Shown here in pieces: positions 14,367-24,897 of a stretch of 64,000 bases of DNA; positions within the stretch are counted from its first letter, which is position 1, and the number at the start of each line of letters is the position of its first letter. The position numbers and the translations under genes were made by a program. Under the pieces are notes generated by a model, which did not search any database, had not been told where the DNA came from, and saw only the letters and a list, made by a program, of their open reading frames with translations. This DNA comes from Piromyces finnis finn. Taxonomy: Eukaryota > Fungi > Neocallimastigomycota. The stretch spans positions 1,488,001-1,552,000 of the forward strand of contig MCFH01000003.1 in assembly GCA_002104945.1 (NCBI GenBank), written 5' to 3'.

Positions 14367-15565
14367 AAGAAATATTTATGTTACCTTTTTTTTTTTTTGT
14401 AAAAAAAAATATAAATATTTATAAATTTAATTAGTAATACTATTAAATTAATTTTATTAAATAAAATATGAATATACCTATATAATGAAAAATAAAATCT
14501 ATCTAAATTTTTATAAATATGAATATGTAACTAATATATATTTTAATATATTCTATTATTTAAATTATAAAAGATTATCTAGATATAACCGATTTTTCTA
14601 TCACTACTACTATAGTATTTATCTAAAATCAAAAATTGCTTATTACTATTAAATATGAAAATTTTTAAATTCTATGTTAACTAAAATAAAAAGTATATTT
14701 AATGTTAAACTAATTTTCTTTTATGAAATTTGTTTATTTTACTATTATAGTTGATGATAATATCAAATTATAAGTTTTTCTATGTATTATCAATTATAAA
14801 ATTCTTCTAAACTTTAATTGAAAAATTAGCTCAACAATAAAAATAGTTATAAAATTGTTACAGAAGAAAAAGAAAAAAAAAAGATAAATAAACTTTTTGC
14901 TAATAATATGCCAACAATTTCTATTTATGATATGTTATCCTTTATAATTATATCGATGGCTTTATTTTTTTTTAATTATATTTAAATTGTAAATTGTTTT
15001 CTATTATTAAAATGAACTTTATTAAAATAACTAGAATGAAAAAATTATTTACTGTAATATTTGTAATATATTGATATAATAAACGATTGAATAGATAGAT
15101 TGAATTATAATAAAATAAAATAATAATTACTTTTATTAAAAGTATACTATATATTTTCTTTTATTGTTAATATTATTAAATATGATGTAAATAAAAAAAT
15201 ATTTTTTTTTAATATTTCTTGATCAGTTTATTTATCCCTTTGTTACTCTTTATATATTCTTTTTTCTAAAATCATAATAATAATATTATTAAATAAAATA
15301 TATATATATATATATTTTTTAATAAATATTTTCTTTTGATATTTTATGTTGAAAAAAGGAAAAAAAAAAAAAATTCTTATTATTTTTTTTTATCTTTGGT
15401 GTTCTTTGCCTGACGATTGTTTTTTTTTTTTTTTACTACTTCGTTCATATATTACTATATATTTTATTTTATATATTCAATTTAATTTAATTTAACTAAT
15501 ATATGTTATAACATGCAATTAATATATTTTCGAAGGTTCATTTTATCTAAATTCCATTTCATTAA

Positions 15566-15582
15566 TACACGTGACTTGTATA
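15566..15582. promoter_or_regulatory. Extended E-box (CACGTGAC) upstream of the HECT ligase gene
   Basis: TACACGTGACTTGTATA, the exact reverse complement of 7158-7174. Confidence 0.45.
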
Positions 15583-15709
15583 AAATCATTTTATTTATTA
15601 ATAAAAAAAATTTGGTGGAAAAAAAAGACCGAATATTTAAATTTATTAAATAATAATTCCAATATTTAAATTTTCATTCTATTATTATTAATATTGGAGT
15701 GGACTATTA

Positions 15710-15743
<34 letters not shown>

Positions 15744-16085
15744 CCTTTCATTAAAAAATAAAATGAACTTATTTTTAAACAAATAATAAAATATGGATTT
15801 CATTATATAATATTAAAAATAGAGGATAAAAAAATGAAAATACCTTTTATCGTTTCACATTAAAATAATTATATAAATAATTAAAAATAACCAAAATAGT
15901 TATATTAAATTTACAAATCAAATATTAATTAAAAATTTTTCTGTATTTTAATTATATTTTCATAAATAATAATTTATTTAGCTTATGGTTGTAGGATTAT
16001 GTTTTATCAACTAAAGAAAAAAAAAACATTCCTAAAAGGTTTTAAAATATTTATACATAATATCAATTGTTTTTTAAAGAGTTAT

Positions 16086-16974
16086 TTACTTGCTTCCCTT
16101 AAAATTAATTGGGATTTTTTCATTAACAAGATGTTGCTTATCTATTAAAATTCAGAATATATATATATATGAATAATTTAAAATAGTAGAAATGTAATAA
16201 TTAATTAAATTACTTACCATAGGAAGTAAGAACTAAATACTTTTCACCAGCAACAAAATTATCAAGTTCTGTAACTTGTTTCATATTCTTATCTAAAATG
16301 ATTTTACTTTTTCCAGTTGGAATCATAGAGGTAGTAAAGTCATTAACCTTTTTAGGATAACACAATATATAATTAAATTATTAATTATTTTTGAATAATT
16401 CCATAGTCTTAATAATTGGAACTAATGTATGAATATAAATATATACTTGTTTCATCGTTGGATATTTTTGTTTAGTTAAAACAATCATTTCACCAGAATG
16501 ATTCTTATTAGCATATTCAAAAAATGTAACCTTCTTTGCTGTAACACCATAATTGTCTACTTTATGAACGACTGGCTTACTCTTTGGCTTTTATAATATA
16601 GAGTGTGTATAAATAATAATATTTAATTATTTATATATATAATAGATAATAAATTTTAATGGAAAATAATATTAAAATAAAATATTTACTCTTGGTTCAA
16701 CTGAATTATCAATAGTATGATTTCTACTTTTAGAACTAGTGTTACCATCATTAATGCATAAATCTTCTCTACCAGCTAAACCTCTTCCTTTTCCATTGGC
16801 ATCAAATCTTTCCCTGTGGGAACCCTATTAATAATATCAAATAAACTATTAAATTACTGGTACTTTGAAAATTCTACTTTTAATAATTTCTTATATATAT
16901 ATATATTTATTGAATATTACAGTATACTTCGATGGATCAGTTAATCTTTCTGTGACAGATTGCTTTGGTGGCAT
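16086..16974 (-). CDS. Apicortin (partial p25alpha/TPPP domain plus DCX domain), 5 small exons, absent from ORF track
   Basis: Spliced: MPPKQSVTERLTDPSKYT|GSHRERFDANGKGRGLAGREDL..EPR|PKSKPVVHKVDNYGVTAKKVTFFEYANKNHSGEMIVLTKQKYPTMKQ|VNDFTTSMIPTGKSKIILDKNMKQVTELDNFVAGEKYLVLTSY|DKQHLVNEKIPINFKGSK*. RLTDPSKYTGSH-ERFD-GKG-G-GR is the p25alpha C-terminal motif; the remainder has DCX-like spacing. Confidence 0.82.
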
Positions 16975-17632
16975 TTTATTATTACCAATATTAATTAGTT
17001 ATTGATTTTTATAATAAAAAAAAATTGAATTTGGAAAAAAAAATCTTTTTTTATATATATTTTAATATTTTATCAATATCTATCATTTTCTAAAGTATAA
17101 AGTTTTAAATATAAAAAATAAAATTTCATCTTTGTTTCAATAAAGTTTATATAAATATAGATTTTTTTTTTTTTTTTAATCCCATTTGAACTTTATTATT
17201 ATAATATTTATAACAATATATATTTTTATTTTTAGTTATGGATATAAAACATATAAAGAGTATCGCCTAGTTGATTATGTATGGATAAAATAATAGATAA
17301 TTATCATTAAAAATCATTTTTATTCAAAGTATTAAAGAAAAAAATATCTATATAAATATTCAAATATGTTTATTAGGTTATGGTGAAGAAAATAATATAG
17401 ATAATTATAAATAAATATTAATGGAACTTATTAAAAAAAAAACATATTTATTTATTATATAAATATCTTCATCAATTTATATATACGGATTATATATATA
17501 TCTCAAATGAAAATAGTATTCTTTTTTTTTTTTTTGTAATATTATGTAGGATTAAAAAAATGATGTTTTATAATTCTAAAGGGTTAAGTTTTTAAATAAA
17601 TATAATCCAATTCATAATATAACATAACCACA

Positions 17633-17639
17633 CACGTGA
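17633..17639. promoter_or_regulatory. E-box CACGTGA in the divergent apicortin/ESS2 intergenic region
   Basis: CACGTGA about 110 bp upstream of the ESS2 ATG. CpG-containing hexamers are rare in this background. Confidence 0.35.
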
Positions 17640-17744
17640 AATTACCATTATCATAAAATTATGAAAATAATTTATCATTCTATGATTAACTTAAAAATAA
17701 TTTAAAGAAAAGTTTAATAATAATTTAATTTTAGAGGATATAAT

Positions 17745-19863
17745 ATGGAAATCACAAAGAATACTACGGATAAAAAAGACTTAATAATAAAGAATTCTGA
17801 AAGAAATGTAAGAGTAGAGAAGAAAAAAATTGTTTTAGAAGAAGATGAATATATTGAAGGTTTAAGTAAGGTTATTAAGCGAGACTATTTTCCAGACAAT
17901 GATAAAATGAAAATTCAAAATGAATTATTAGATGCACTTCAAGAACAAGATTCGTTTAGAGCAAGGAATTTATCAAAGCAATTATTAAATTATGATGCTG
18001 ATAAAAGTAAAGGTAATTTAACAAACGTTAATAATAATATATAATATATATAGTATAATGGAGTATAATTGAATAATTTTATATTTTAAATAAATATATA
18101 AACATTTTCAATTTATTATATGATAATTCATTTTCAATTCATTGGCATGTGAAATTAGAAAATTTACAAAAAAACGAAAATGGAATAGATACGTCATTGT
18201 CAGTTGATGCTTATCAGAGTAAATATACAAGCGAAGATAATGATTCTTTTAATGAAATTATAGCAAAAAATAATGAAATGAAGAAAATGAGAAATGAAAA
18301 ACTTTATGGACAAGAAAAAACAAAATTATTAATGAGTAGTAATGCTCAAAATGCATCCGATGTTGGAAAAACAGTTGAAACTAAACAAATTGAGACATGG
18401 AAATATAAAGTAAAAAAGTAATAATTTTTAAATAATAGGATATTAAAAGATTATTTAAATTAACAATATTTTATATTTCACATTTCGTTATTTCTTATTG
18501 AATTTTTTATTATATGAAATTTCAAATCCTTGCATTTTTGTAACCATTTAAAATTAATTCGAAATTAGACACAGAATACACTCATGTTTATCCCTGATAG
18601 TAATCATTTACTCAAGGAAAGTGAAGAAGTAAAACGTCAAGCACCAAAACAAATTTCACATAGTAATACTCGTTTTGATACTACACCTTCTATACAGGAA
18701 ATTAAAGAACAGGTATTCATTATATTCATTTATTGATATTTTGAAATTTAATTATTGTAATTAATTGGTTATTAATTAAAATAAATGAATATAAATTATA
18801 AAACTTTTAATACTTTTTATTTAATAAAATAATTATGAAGGAACGTATAAAAACACAGGAAGTTTGGAAAACCATGATAAATTCAACCCCTGGCCTATTT
18901 AAAAATGGTAAAAAAAAAAAAATTTTTAAGAAATAATTATAAATAATGTAAGAGAATTAAATTATTTATTAAAATTATTTTATTGTCAATTATTTCGTCT
19001 ATAAAAAGAAATGTTAGAATTACAATCTGAAGGTACAGACGGTTATAAAATGGTAGCTTCTACCCCATCACCCAATCCAAATAGAATTGATCAATCCGAT
19101 ATGTTTACTTGGGGTAGTATTGAAGGAACACCATTATTAATTAATTCTGGTGGAGCTAGTAGTGGTAATGCTTTAGTAATCAGTGCATTATTTTAATTAA
19201 ACAAGTATTATAGTTGTTGAGTTCATTTTTTAATTTTATATATAAAAATATATTTGTATTTTTGTATAGGACCTGTATTCAAAATACCAGAAACTCCAAG
19301 AAGAGAATTAATAGGAATGAAACTTTCAGAAAAAGCATCTTCTAATATGAGAAAAAGATTAGGAAAAACGCCAAAGTCTTCTTTATCTCATTTAACACCA
19401 AAGCAACGTCTAACTTCACCTTTGCTTTCAAGAGCAAATGCACTTTCACCTGCTGCTAAAAATTTATTACAAAGAAGTCTTAAATCACCTGGTGGTAAGG
19501 CATTAATGAAAGGACTTTCTTCGGATTATAAATTAAAGAAAAGTTATAATAGTCCATTATTATGTATTGTATCATGTATCATTATTCTGTTTTATTCTGT
19601 TTTATTATAAGAAGTTTAAAATATCTTATTATGATGGTTTTCTAATTATTTTATTTATTTTAATATTTTATATATACACCCTATTATTTATAGATAATTC
19701 ACCATCCCTTCATCGTTCATCTAAATTATCTACAGGAATTGTTCGTAAATCATCGTCTCTAAGAAAACAAGTCGCTACCCCATCAACGTCATCAATAATA
19801 AAAAATACACCAAATCAATCATCATCATCATTAACTGATGATTTATTGAACTTTAAAGAATAA
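17745..19863 (+). CDS. ESS2: Splicing factor ESS2/DGCR14 (Es2) homolog, multi-exon
   Basis: Motifs VLEEDEYIEGLSKVIKRDYFPD, SVDAYQSKYTSEDNDSFNEI, WKYK-TQNTLMFIP, SPNPNRIDQSDMFTWGSIEGTP, GPVFKIPETPRRELIG, ending in an S/T/P-rich tail LTDDLLNFKE*. Confidence 0.9.
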
Positions 19864-20186
19864 ACTAGGTTTATTAAAATTATAAAATTATCAACACTTT
19901 TCTATTCCATTAATCTATTTATTTAATTTGACATACTTGTAAAAATCTTGTAATTTCTTCCCATTATTTATTTAACATTATAAAAAAAAAAAAAAATAAT
20001 AATCAATCCTCATAGTAAAATAAAAAATTCATTTAATCTAATCCTTTAATCAGAAAAATTTTAGTGTTTTTTAATTATTAAATAAATTAAAATATTTAAT
20101 TTCTTTTATTTTTTTTTTAATTAAAATTATGATTAATTAAAAATAAAAATTCAAAAAATGTAAAACCCTTTGGATTAATAGATGTT

Positions 20187-20889
20187 ATGTTATTTATACA
20201 AATTGGTCAATGTGGAATTCAATGTGGGCAAGAAATAATACAAAAAATAAACAAAAAGTAATATATAAAGGTGTTATAAAATGCGGTATTTAATATTTAA
20301 AAGTGTATTAATTTTTATTGTATAAATTACATATATAAAATTAATATAAAAGTAATGAATTAGGAAATTCAATAAAGGAATTAGTCATAGATACAGAATC
20401 AAAAGTTATTAATAAATATAAATGTAAAAATAACAAAGAATATTTATATAAAAAGTATTTTCAAATTGGAAAAGATGGTTCAGGAAATAATTGGTCTTTT
20501 GGATATTGTAAAGTTAATGAAGAACTAATTCATTCGGTCATGGATAATTTTAATCAACTTTTAGAGTCCATTGATTTACATAAAGGATTAAATGTAATTT
20601 CTTTATTTTTTAAAATAATAAATTAAATATAAGAGTGTTTTAAAATTTGATAACAATTATACTATTGTCATTATGTAATATTATAATTAATTCAGTATAT
20701 TAATTGAAAAAAAAAAAAAATAGATTGTTCATAGTATAGCAGGTGGAACTGGTTCAGGCATATTTTCAAAAATTATTGAGGAAATTAGAGATAGATATCC
20801 AAAATCTTGCATAAGTACATATTCGTATGTATTTAATAATGCTATAATTATATTAATGGAAAATTTATTTCATATTATCAAACAAAATG

Positions 20890-20927
<38 letters not shown>

Positions 20928-22027
20928 TGGTATATAGCATTTTTCCATTTGAATCTGGTGAAAATACATTACAATATTATAATTCTGTTTTTTCCTTGTC
21001 TTGGGTACAAAAATATTCAGATATTGCTTATTGTTTTTCAAATAAAGAAATATTAGATATATTGTGTAAAGAAAAAAAGACAAAGAACTATTCTTTGAAT
21101 GATATTAATGAATATATTTCTAATTGTGTTTCAAGCTTGTATCCCTATGGGAATAAAATGTAATTTTTTATTATATTTTTTTTCTAAAAAATATAATATA
21201 TAGGACATAATAAATAGTAGTAATAGTAGTAATAGTAATAGTAATAGTAATAATATATAATACATTATGAAATAATTATTAATACTCTATTATGCAACAA
21301 TAATGTCACTAATTATTATTTATTAATAATAATAATGTATGATAAAATAATATTTTAGACAATATATAAATAACTGGGATATAATATATAATATATGTCC
21401 TATTCCATCAATGAAATTATTAAAGGTCTATTCAGATTCTTCACTGGATAACTTGGTAAAAAATATTCCAAGTAATTATAATAATAGCAAGTAAGAATTG
21501 ATGAGTATAAATTATTTTATTTATTATAATATATATAAAAAAGGTTAAAATTCCATTATATTTATTATTAAAATTAACTACTATGGAAATTATCAAAAAG
21601 ATTAATTAGTGGTAGATTAAATCTGGTTAGTAATGATGATATGGACGAAAGAACATTAACTAAGCTATATAAGAAAATTGGAATTTTATCTAATCCGGAA
21701 TGTCTTTCCATAAACTATTTAAGATCGAAATCAGTAAAAAAAAGTTATAGTCAGCCTCGAATCAATTCATTAAAGGAAGATGAAAGTCGCCCATCACATT
21801 TACCTACTATAAATCCAAAATCCCGGATATCTTTACTTAAAAATTCAACAGATATTCTTCCGTCTCTTAATTATTTTTTAAACAAGTCAATATATATGTA
21901 TAAAAATGGAGCCTATTGGAATTATTTTAAAAAATATAATGATAATATTGATGATTTATTTATAGAATCCTATAATACTTTGTATGATTGTAGAAACGCT
22001 TATATGGAATGGCACGATGATATATAA
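20187..22027 (+). CDS. Divergent tubulin of the delta/zeta class, most similar to zeta (cryptic) tubulin; about 6 exons
   Basis: Spliced: [130 protein letters not shown]. All junctions are GT-AG and phase-consistent. Tubulin identity is secure; the subfamily comes from recalled motifs. Confidence 0.8.
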
Positions 22028-22240
22028 CCCTCTATTTTTTTGTTATTATTATATATATATTAATCGAAATTTTCAATACATTACTACTATTATTATTATC
22101 ATCGTATTATTAAAATCAAACAATACTATATTTATTTAACACAAAAATTTATTATTAATAATACCATTTATCTATTGCTATTATTATATATATTATAAAT
22201 TTTATTATTATTTATCCAAAATTTTATTATTTTATTTTAT

Positions 22241-22280
<40 letters not shown>

Positions 22281-22340
22281 ACTATTATCAAAATTATTTT
22301 TAATAAAATAAAAAGTTTTAATGATAAAGAAATACAAATC

Positions 22341-23113
22341 TTATTTACTATTCGTATAGTTCAATAAAAATTGTAAAAACAATTTTAAATCTTTTTCTAA
22401 TTCAATAGAATCAATTTTGATATTGGAATTAAAATAATTTTCCAAAGCTTCTATACAGTTGGTTAATTTAATTTTAACTGTATCATCACTAATATAATTA
22501 AAGGGTAATAAATAGATGTAGAAAAAAAAAAAAAAGTAGCCTTAGTATAAATGCTAAAAATTATTTTAATCTATTTGAAAAAAAAAACAACAACTACATA
22601 CCATGGTATTTTTTTATCTGTAATAGCATATTTTAAAACCATTAATTTTGTTGGTATATCGTATGATAAATAGGATTCATGAAAAATTTCTTCCAAAGTT
22701 TTTTCTAACAATAATTCACAGGCACATATCAATTGTAAACATATAAAAGAGTAATTAGAATTACTATTTATGGAATTAGGTGATATAGATATATTTTTGG
22801 TTTTCTCTATGGAAAGGGTGTTTATATTAATTTTTCGATAGAGTATTTTTTTCCTTTTTTTAGAAGAATTTAAATCTTTCTTTTTTAAAGGTGTATTTGA
22901 CACTATTCCATTATATTCCTTTTTTTTCCCTATGAAACTATCTGAATTCTTTTGTTTGGATATTATTGAAGTAACATAGGATGTATAAATATTTTCTTTA
23001 TTCTATTTATTATGTTAATTTTAAAATTATTATTTGTTATTAATATCATTAAATATTATATATATTTAATATATTATATATAAATATATATATTTTTTAA
23101 TTTATTAGTAATG

Positions 23114-23149
<36 letters not shown>

Positions 23150-23544
23150 TTATATTTTAAAATATTTACGTTTAAATTATCTCTAATCTTCATATTTTCT
23201 AATGAATTTGAATGGAATTTATGTAAATGTTTTTGAAAAGCGATATGTGATAAACTTCTTCCATTTTCGTTGGAACAATGAGCACAATTATATCTCAACG
23301 ATGATATACAATCAATTCCATTATCAGATACGGAACATTTATGTTTAAAATTATCTGGTTGGTCCCCATGAATAGGACAAAAACATTTTATATAATTATT
23401 TGCGGGTAAATTTTTAATTAAAGGTTGAATAGATTCTGAAGTATAATAATAAGAACCATTTGGAATTATATTTTTAAAGTTGGAAACATTACTTAATAAT
23501 GTATTATTGAAGTTTGAATAATTATTACTAAGCGTTTGAACCAT
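22341..23544 (-). CDS. Hypothetical protein with a possible Cys/His zinc-binding N-terminal region (about 3 exons)
   Basis: ORF 23143..23544 (CFCPIH..C..CAHC-x14-H-x3-H), ORF 22571..22903 and a final exon ending ..LNYTNSK* at 22341. The second junction (CCA TG|gtatgt..ttag|T GAT) is phase-consistent; the first junction is not resolved. Confidence 0.5.
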
Positions 23545-23608
23545 TTTCTATTGTTGTATTATTATATGATATGCAAATGTAAATATAAATATATATAATG
23601 GCGTCGTG

Positions 23609-23639
<31 letters not shown>

Positions 23640-24897
23640 AAGAAAAAGTATTAAAAAATACTACTATTAAATTATTAATAAAAATATAAATTTAAACTAT
23701 TGAAACATTTATAGCTAATAAAAGATAGAAGCAATGTTAGTATTTAAAACAATGCTATGTATATGTTACAATTTATTTTTTTTATGTTTATTTTAAATAT
23801 AACATATATTATTAATGAATTAATGGTTACTATTAATTTTTTATTAAAAAAAAAAAAAAAACAATAAATATTTAATAGAATAAAAAAAAAAGAAAAGTTT
23901 TTCTTTCTCCCTTTCCTCTTTCTATTAAACTTTTTTTTTTTTTTTTTAAATCTTTAAAGTTTCTTGTAAAAATCGCAAAAAAAAAAAAAAAAAAAAAAAT
24001 TTTTATTTTTATTTTTTTTTAAATTAAAATTAAAATTTACGGACAATGGACAATGAAATTTTTTTTTTTTTTGTGATTTTCTAAAAACATCAAAACAAAA
24101 AATTTTAATTAAACATTTAAATTAAAAAAATTTAATTAAGAATTTTTCATTTTTAGTGGGTTCAAAAGAACTTTTTAATACTTTTTAATAATTAAGTCAA
24201 AAGAAACTATCATTACCACTACTTTTTCAATACTATATAAATCTGTATCTATATACCATAGAATTAATAGCATTTTTAAACTATTTTTTTTATGTATATG
24301 ATACATTTTTTAATATTATTGTAAAAACAAACTTTGTAATACTTTCTTGCAATATATATATAAAGAGAGCATTATTTAATAAAAGTTAACGTCATTTTGA
24401 GTAGATAATAACTCTTTATATAAAAATTAATTTTTTTTTTTAAATAGATTTAAATTATATATTTATTCTTGTTTATTATATATAAAATATACATTATTAT
24501 ATTATTATTATATTAAAAACTAATAATAAGAAAAAAAATTGATTGAAAGGTAAAGTGTATTTGTTATGTTTTGTGGTTTATGATTTTTAGTATTAATGAA
24601 ATACAATGCTAAACTAATATTATAATTTTTTTTTGATTTTGGTTGCAATTTTTATTAATAAATTAATATTATTTGTATAAAAATAATAAAAAATGGAATT
24701 GATTTTGTATATATATATTTTTTGAAATATAAATAATTAATAATTGAATATTATATTAATTGCAATTATTAAAAAAAAATTTATATATATTTAATATTAT
24801 TTAAATTGGTAATATTATGTTATGCTTTTTTAAGAGTTATAATGAGAAGGTGATGCTTATAGGTATTAGATCTGGTTTATCGTAAATTAATTTTTTT

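Follow-up and report, generated by a model that had tools for sequence, protein, structure and literature searches.

Positions 20187-22027 on the forward strand of a 64,000-nucleotide stretch of the Piromyces finnis genome (G000:C156:1488001-1552000, hereafter the window; strongly AT-rich) hold a six-exon gene with, by three-frame reading, a 397-residue tubulin-like product. We consider this gene to be the zeta-tubulin of P. finnis, complete, expressed and orthologous to the zeta-type tubulin of chytrids, with a role that is most likely at the basal body rather than in the microtubule wall, and assign this reading a probability of about 0.85.

The coding sequence begins with an ATG at 20187 and ends with a TAA at 22025-22027. 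Each of the introns, five in number, is bounded by GT..AG, and a codon is split at four of the five junctions. Exon 1 (20187-20257) encodes the initiator methionine, strand S1 and the T1 loop GQCGIQ, matches positions 3-22 of the Pfam Tubulin profile (PF00091) and ends in a split codon at its GT..AG joint with exon 2 (20257>20353). Exon 2 (20353-20593; PF00091 positions 46-110, E 7e-10) contains the short H1-S2 region, strand S2 (VIDTE) and the T3 loop GSGNNW, and its joint with exon 3 (20593>20724) was seen in four sequencing runs. The T4 signature AGGTGSG lies in exon 3 (20724-20824; PF00091 positions 114-144), which the contigs of runs X1-X4 join directly to exon 4, while exon 4 (20938-21159; PF00091 positions 148-189) extends from the T5 region through helix H7 (NDINEYIS). 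The two remaining joints, 21159>21359 and 21490>21601, are again GT..AG and enclose exon 5 (21359-21490), which covers the T7/H8 region and a zeta-type motif. As judged from the translation and the confidence of the structural model, exon 6 (21601-22027) comprises lineage-specific low-confidence loops, the C-terminal helices H11-H12 and the TAA stop. The initial annotation had proposed about six exons; six were found, now with exact coordinates, and the motifs it quoted, including GQCGIQ, GSGNNW, AGGTGSG and CPIPSMKLL, all occur in the exon translations.

Transcript contigs show that the gene is intact and that it is both spliced and expressed. A 1428-nt contig of run X1 (record 2) extends from position 20142 to 22216, lacks each of the five introns and matches the window without a single mismatch, and contigs of runs X2, X3 and X4 have these junctions over part of the gene, so that the four runs, from three studies, agree on the splicing. 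The X1 contig also gives a minimum extent for the 5' untranslated part (20142-20186, forward strand), as such contigs cannot fix the true start, and for the 3' untranslated part (22028-22216, forward strand). Of the words sampled from the 2-kb region, the four public runs contain 20-56%, approximately the expectation for exons only. The type of these runs was guessed as RNA; even so, the precise splicing of the contigs indicates that the gene is transcribed. The lack of spliced transcripts that was named beforehand as a sign of a pseudogene is thus not observed.

All six exon translations are contained, in order and unchanged, in the public model ORX59330.1 (P0023; UniProt A0A1Y1VLI7, 397 aa), named 'tubulin nucleotide-binding domain-like protein'. 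Exon 2 as a query against the protein representatives led to P0001, a 396-residue protein of Neocallimastix with 71% identity across this exon, and a word search with P0001 returned P0023. Exons were searched singly, and the whole-protein analyses below were run on P0023. Upstream, at window positions 17745-19863 on the forward strand, lies a multi-exon gene for the nuclear protein Es2 (PF09751), of which three ORF pieces fit profile positions 2-61, 118-185 and 351-416.

The match of P0023 to PF00091 spans 3-188 of the 190 profile positions and scores 143.6 bits (E 1.1e-41), with exons 1-4 each matching consecutive segments, and the T1, T3 and T4 motifs of the protein line up with their counterparts in alpha-, gamma-, delta- and zeta-tubulins. 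No match to the Pfam Tubulin_C profile was obtained for P0023. An AlphaFold2 model based on a 50-sequence alignment reached a mean pLDDT of 83.4 and a pTM of 0.86; pLDDT falls below 50 only at residues 271-291 and 304-322 and is high from about residue 331. In a Foldseek search this model retrieved beta-tubulin chains at TMq 0.75-0.78 (E ~1e-22), and the ESM Atlas model of the sequence (pTM 0.83) aligned over residues 1-397. P0023 is thus a member of the tubulin superfamily with a complete predicted three-domain tubulin fold. For the class of the protein these resources were uninformative: the ESM Atlas clusters are named 'Tubulin delta chain' only, without class information here or for an exon of the epsilon-like gene described below, and every match to exon 2, exon 6 or the full-length protein in the PDB was an alpha-, beta-, gamma- or Asgard tubulin, with no delta, epsilon or zeta structure among these matches by which to name it. 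P0023 shares 70% identity with its Neocallimastix and 74% with its Anaeromyces orthologue and 29-33% with its chytrid relatives, and the stem branch of the Neocallimastigomycota has a length of 1.64 changes per site in the maximum likelihood (ML) tree. The gene had been called highly divergent, and these values bear that description out.

The class was addressed with a careful ML tree of 64 proteins and 465 alignment columns under the LG+C20+F+G4 model, with alpha-, beta- and gamma-tubulins as outgroups. Its sequences came from three word searches with the Neocallimastix orthologue, Batrachochytrium dendrobatidis P0015 and Priapulus P0152 as queries; the P. finnis delta, gamma and epsilon-like loci, which were assessed one exon at a time, were left out of the tree. 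Delta- and zeta-tubulins form a supergroup (support 100/97; 100* in the quick tree) that splits into two clades. Clade A (100/98) comprises the 'tubulin delta chain' of ray-finned fish, green-algal delta-tubulins and many invertebrate proteins. Clade B (100/97) comprises 'delta chain-like' proteins of frogs and coelacanth, a second set of invertebrate proteins, oomycetes, a ciliate, Andalucia and the fungi; one of its oomycete proteins bears the name 'cryptic tubulin'. Six animals (Lottia, Lineus, Babylonia, Glandiceps, Tubulanus and Brachionus) contribute one protein to each clade, and A and B therefore appear to be two old paralogues. Database names were rejected as evidence of class, as 'tubulin delta chain' or 'delta chain-like' occurs in both clades, the vertebrate delta chain of fish being the sole exception. 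Because this vertebrate delta chain falls in clade A, we take clade A to be delta. The vertebrates of clade B are frogs and coelacanth only among the matches listed, and no mammals. Placental mammals lack zeta (PMC5653238), and chytrids are reported to have zeta and epsilon (PMC12659703) and to lack delta (PMC4202323). Taken together, the vertebrate distribution and the presence of zeta without delta in chytrids support the designation of clade B as zeta, a label reached through indirect anchors, with no database-named zeta among its sequences.

Within clade B, the proteins of the three gut fungi group together (100/100) and have twelve chytrid proteins (99/96) as their sister group, and the resulting fungal clade (100/99) adjoins the animal zeta proteins, as the species tree predicts. 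Forcing the gut-fungus proteins into delta cost 38.6 lnL units and was rejected by the AU test (p=0.011) and by the KH and SH tests (both p=0.017), which were run with the simple model LG+F+G4 and fast searches. With the chytrids removed, the gut-fungus proteins still fell on the zeta side (SH-aLRT 95.7), now as sister to the whole of clade B and not nested within it. All three gut-fungus sequences failed the composition test, reflecting a biased amino-acid make-up, which together with the long stem invites long-branch artefacts. Among the matches listed, the best database relatives beyond the gut fungi were chytrid and oomycete members of clade B. The tree thus favours the preference for zeta over delta expressed from sequence motifs in the initial annotation, and by the sequence comparison the P. 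finnis gene is orthologous to the one delta/zeta-type tubulin that chytrids possess.

The other tubulin loci of the genome agree with this assignment. In a Pfam scan of the whole assembly (56.46 Mb, 232 contigs), a beta gene was found at C156:1286k, an alpha gene at C154:148k, a further strong match to Pfam Tubulin at C167:1221k and a beta-tubulin with a giant tail at C167:442k. A gamma gene on the reverse strand at C1:349k (within C1:345000-353000, L043) has at least nine exons and matches P0039 best, with HSPs up to 94% identical and a sum of 668 bits. Three divergent tubulin loci were present in the scan, the zeta-type gene included. One of the other two is a multi-exon delta gene on the reverse strand of C156 (~1293.8-1296.3 kb; L042:2831-5266), 213 kb upstream of the zeta-type gene, in which clade A was the best match in every exon. 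The median sum of bits at this locus was 212 for delta, 102 for zeta and 43.5 for chytrid proteins, and its top match was a fish 'Tubulin delta chain' (299 bits, residues 1-446). The delta query P0152 matched the delta locus and gave no match to the zeta-type gene at E<=0.01; reciprocally, the chytrid query P0015 matched the zeta-type gene and not the delta locus. A grouping with delta combined with the lack of any other delta copy had been named as the outcome that would make the gene an ordinary divergent delta; the gene instead lies on the zeta side, and the genome carries a separate delta.

The third divergent locus, on the reverse strand of C165 (~430.0-432.9 kb; L044:2033-4938), scored equally and moderately against beta and gamma and contains a long repeat of Asn codons. 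Its peptides (WRFWDLALKEH..., DDDVITSPYN, NEISMNLVPFP) resemble human epsilon-tubulin, and we take the locus to be a putative epsilon-like tubulin gene.

Zeta-tubulin (TUBZ1; the 'eta' or 'cryptic' tubulin of protists) is said to have been defined by Findeisen and colleagues in 2014 and Turk and colleagues in 2015. Besides its place in the same clade, the P. finnis protein shares with this class a short H1-S2 region, the motifs LQxYN and PxPSMK and an AY..Y.KY pattern in H11/H12, and its gene occurs, in an organism with flagella, together with genes for delta and for an epsilon-like tubulin. In the P. finnis protein the first motif reads LQYYN where delta has VQNYN (in TGEVIVQNYN), and the second PIPSMK where delta has HPEFK (in ..HPEFKLL). 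Three of four zeta-typical traits, namely the short H1-S2 region, LQxYN and PxPSMK, are therefore present, while the fourth, GRGNNW, is replaced by GSGNNW. The protein differs from other zeta-tubulins in being shorter (397 aa versus a median of ~422-432), in carrying Ile for Asn in T1 and Ser for Arg in T3, in its lineage-specific low-confidence loops (residues 271-291 and 304-322) and in its very fast evolution. The chytrid zeta-type proteins, represented by B. dendrobatidis BATDEDRAFT_89091 (the cluster of P0015), are its sister group and have in common with it GQCGIQ, the pattern WD(L/I)I..P(M/I)PSMK and LF.ES(F/Y) near the C-terminus. They are distinguished from it, apart from the low identity, by a retained GRGNNW and longer loops after S7, and at the level of the genome by the reported lack of delta (PMC4202323), which P. 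finnis has. Delta-tubulin (TUBD1; UNI3 of Chlamydomonas) belongs to the same supergroup and shares GSGNNW, but falls in the other clade and has an insert of ~25-30 residues in H1-S2 that the P. finnis protein lacks.

Two of these characters had been read as hints of altered GTP handling. The first, the replacement of the conserved T1 Asn by Ile, is real; GQCGIQ is found in 3/3 gut fungi, 9/12 chytrid zeta-tubulins, 0/19 other zeta-tubulins and 0/23 delta-tubulins, and two of the remaining chytrids have GQCGVQ or GQAGIQ. On the sequences compared it is a shared trait of fungal zeta and not a quirk of the P. finnis gene. Alpha-tubulin has Val in this column (GQAGVQ), and since alpha-tubulin binds GTP, a hydrophobic residue in T1 is compatible with GTP binding; the proposed change in GTP handling is thus poorly supported. 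The second, the very short H1-S2 region, was likewise confirmed as a feature but not as one specific to this gene: the median T1-to-T3 spacing is 59-60 in gut fungi, 66 in chytrid zeta, 67 in other zeta and 92.5 in delta, which makes it a trait of the zeta class that appears slightly exaggerated in P. finnis. The description of the T3 loop as delta-like was accurate, as GSGNNW occurs in 3/3 gut fungi and 20/23 delta-tubulins, whereas 11/12 chytrids have GRGNNW, also the most frequent form in other zeta-tubulins; it is the sole delta-like feature of the P. finnis gene. Besides T1 and T3, the nucleotide-contact columns are kept (T4 signature, Asn173 and Asn195), and the nucleotide pocket of P0023 is predicted to be largely intact.

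GQCGIQ was also seen in P0129, a 475-residue protein filed under Nothophytophthora sp., and in the unnamed metagenome proteins P0038, P0078 and P0079. Its occurrence in the oomycete-filed P0129 may reflect convergence, contamination or a mislabelled contig.

That the gene is simply a fast-evolving delta-tubulin is very improbable. The T3 loop would suit such an origin, the relatives in Anaeromyces and B. dendrobatidis are entered in UniRef as 'Tubulin delta chain', and a survey lists one delta and no zeta for the fungi (PMC4202323). Yet the tree places the gene in the other clade with support of 100/97 and 100/99, the AU test rejects its joining delta, and the long H1-S2 insert of delta is missing. 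The delta gene of P. finnis is moreover a different locus, with a median of 212 bits for delta versus 102 for zeta, and it is the chytrid query and not the delta query that finds the gene in the window. We regard the delta reading as largely refuted. Slightly more credible, though still improbable, is a lineage-specific divergent tubulin that is neither delta nor zeta and is drawn to the chytrids by a long-branch or compositional artefact. The stem of 1.64, the failed composition tests and the position outside clade B proper once the chytrids are removed would all be expected of it. The rare T1 Ile and several motifs held in common with chytrid zeta argue against it independently of the tree; the placement mirrors the species tree, with fungi beside animals and gut fungi beside chytrids; the best relatives outside the gut fungi, among the matches listed, belong to the chytrids and oomycetes of clade B; and the tree was built under a site-heterogeneous model, the kind that suffers least from such artefacts.

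Least credible of the alternatives is a gene copy that is decaying or has lost its function. It would be in line with the strong divergence, the missing Tubulin_C match, the two poorly modelled loops and a second copy with broken frames on C147. This 11.6-kb contig is collinear with window positions 14397-23851 at ~98.9% identity (L019, C147:1-10000), and over the six tubulin exons it differs by nine single-base indels and no substitution. Such indel-only differences are the pattern of an unpolished redundant contig, and a true paralogue or pseudogene was rejected for this copy; C147 is probably an assembly duplicate, which explains the odd truncated public model of 243 aa (P0025). The copy in the window, on the other hand, has a frame of 397 codons open over six exons and spliced exactly in transcripts, retains 70-74% identity in two other genera, keeps all nucleotide-binding signatures and yields a confidently modelled fold.

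The preferred reading thus remains a functional zeta-tubulin. A more specific version of it, in which the zeta-tubulins of Chytridiomycota and Neocallimastigomycota would constitute a subclass whose nucleotide pocket has been remodelled, carrying an Ile akin to the residue of alpha-tubulin and in the gut fungi an additional Arg-to-Ser change in T3, is speculative and on balance unlikely. The GTP of alpha-tubulin is neither exchanged nor hydrolysed. If the remodelled pocket were that of a permanently GTP-loaded structural zeta, it would give new insight into the workings of centriolar tubulins.

Zeta, epsilon and delta are the three centriole-linked tubulins and constitute the ZED module; the established work on zeta/eta and on this module is that of Turk et al. 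2015, to which PMC5653238 and PMC12659703 both refer. By analogy with zeta/eta of Xenopus, Paramecium and Trypanosoma, the P. finnis protein is most likely not part of the microtubule wall. It probably acts instead at the basal body (kinetosome) of the zoospore and its appendages, during zoospore formation, and would work together with the delta and epsilon-like tubulins that the genome encodes separately. Piromyces and Anaeromyces are uniflagellate and Neocallimastix is polyflagellate. A link to multiflagellate zoospores, as suggested in the initial annotation, is unsupported, since orthologues occur in these three genera of anaerobic gut fungi alike.

The gene model was already public, and zeta in zoosporic fungi had already been reported: a 2025 paper describes three of four clades of zoosporic fungi as having zeta, epsilon and delta together (PMC12659703), and a figure legend in its preprint gives the Neocallimastigomycetes as one of the four. 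An earlier survey, from 2014, had recorded no zeta and one delta in fungi and an absence of epsilon from the Neocallimastigomycota (PMC4202323). The occurrence of zeta, delta and an epsilon-like gene in one genome agrees with the 2025 statement that the ZED module is complete in most clades of zoosporic fungi, and corrects the 2014 survey with respect to fungal zeta and, as far as the putative epsilon-like locus holds, to epsilon in the Neocallimastigomycota. For the annotation, the generically named ORX59330.1 (A0A1Y1VLI7) can be settled as P. finnis zeta-tubulin. It is otherwise an ordinary member of a known family and a useful marker for the basal-body biology of gut-fungus zoospores.
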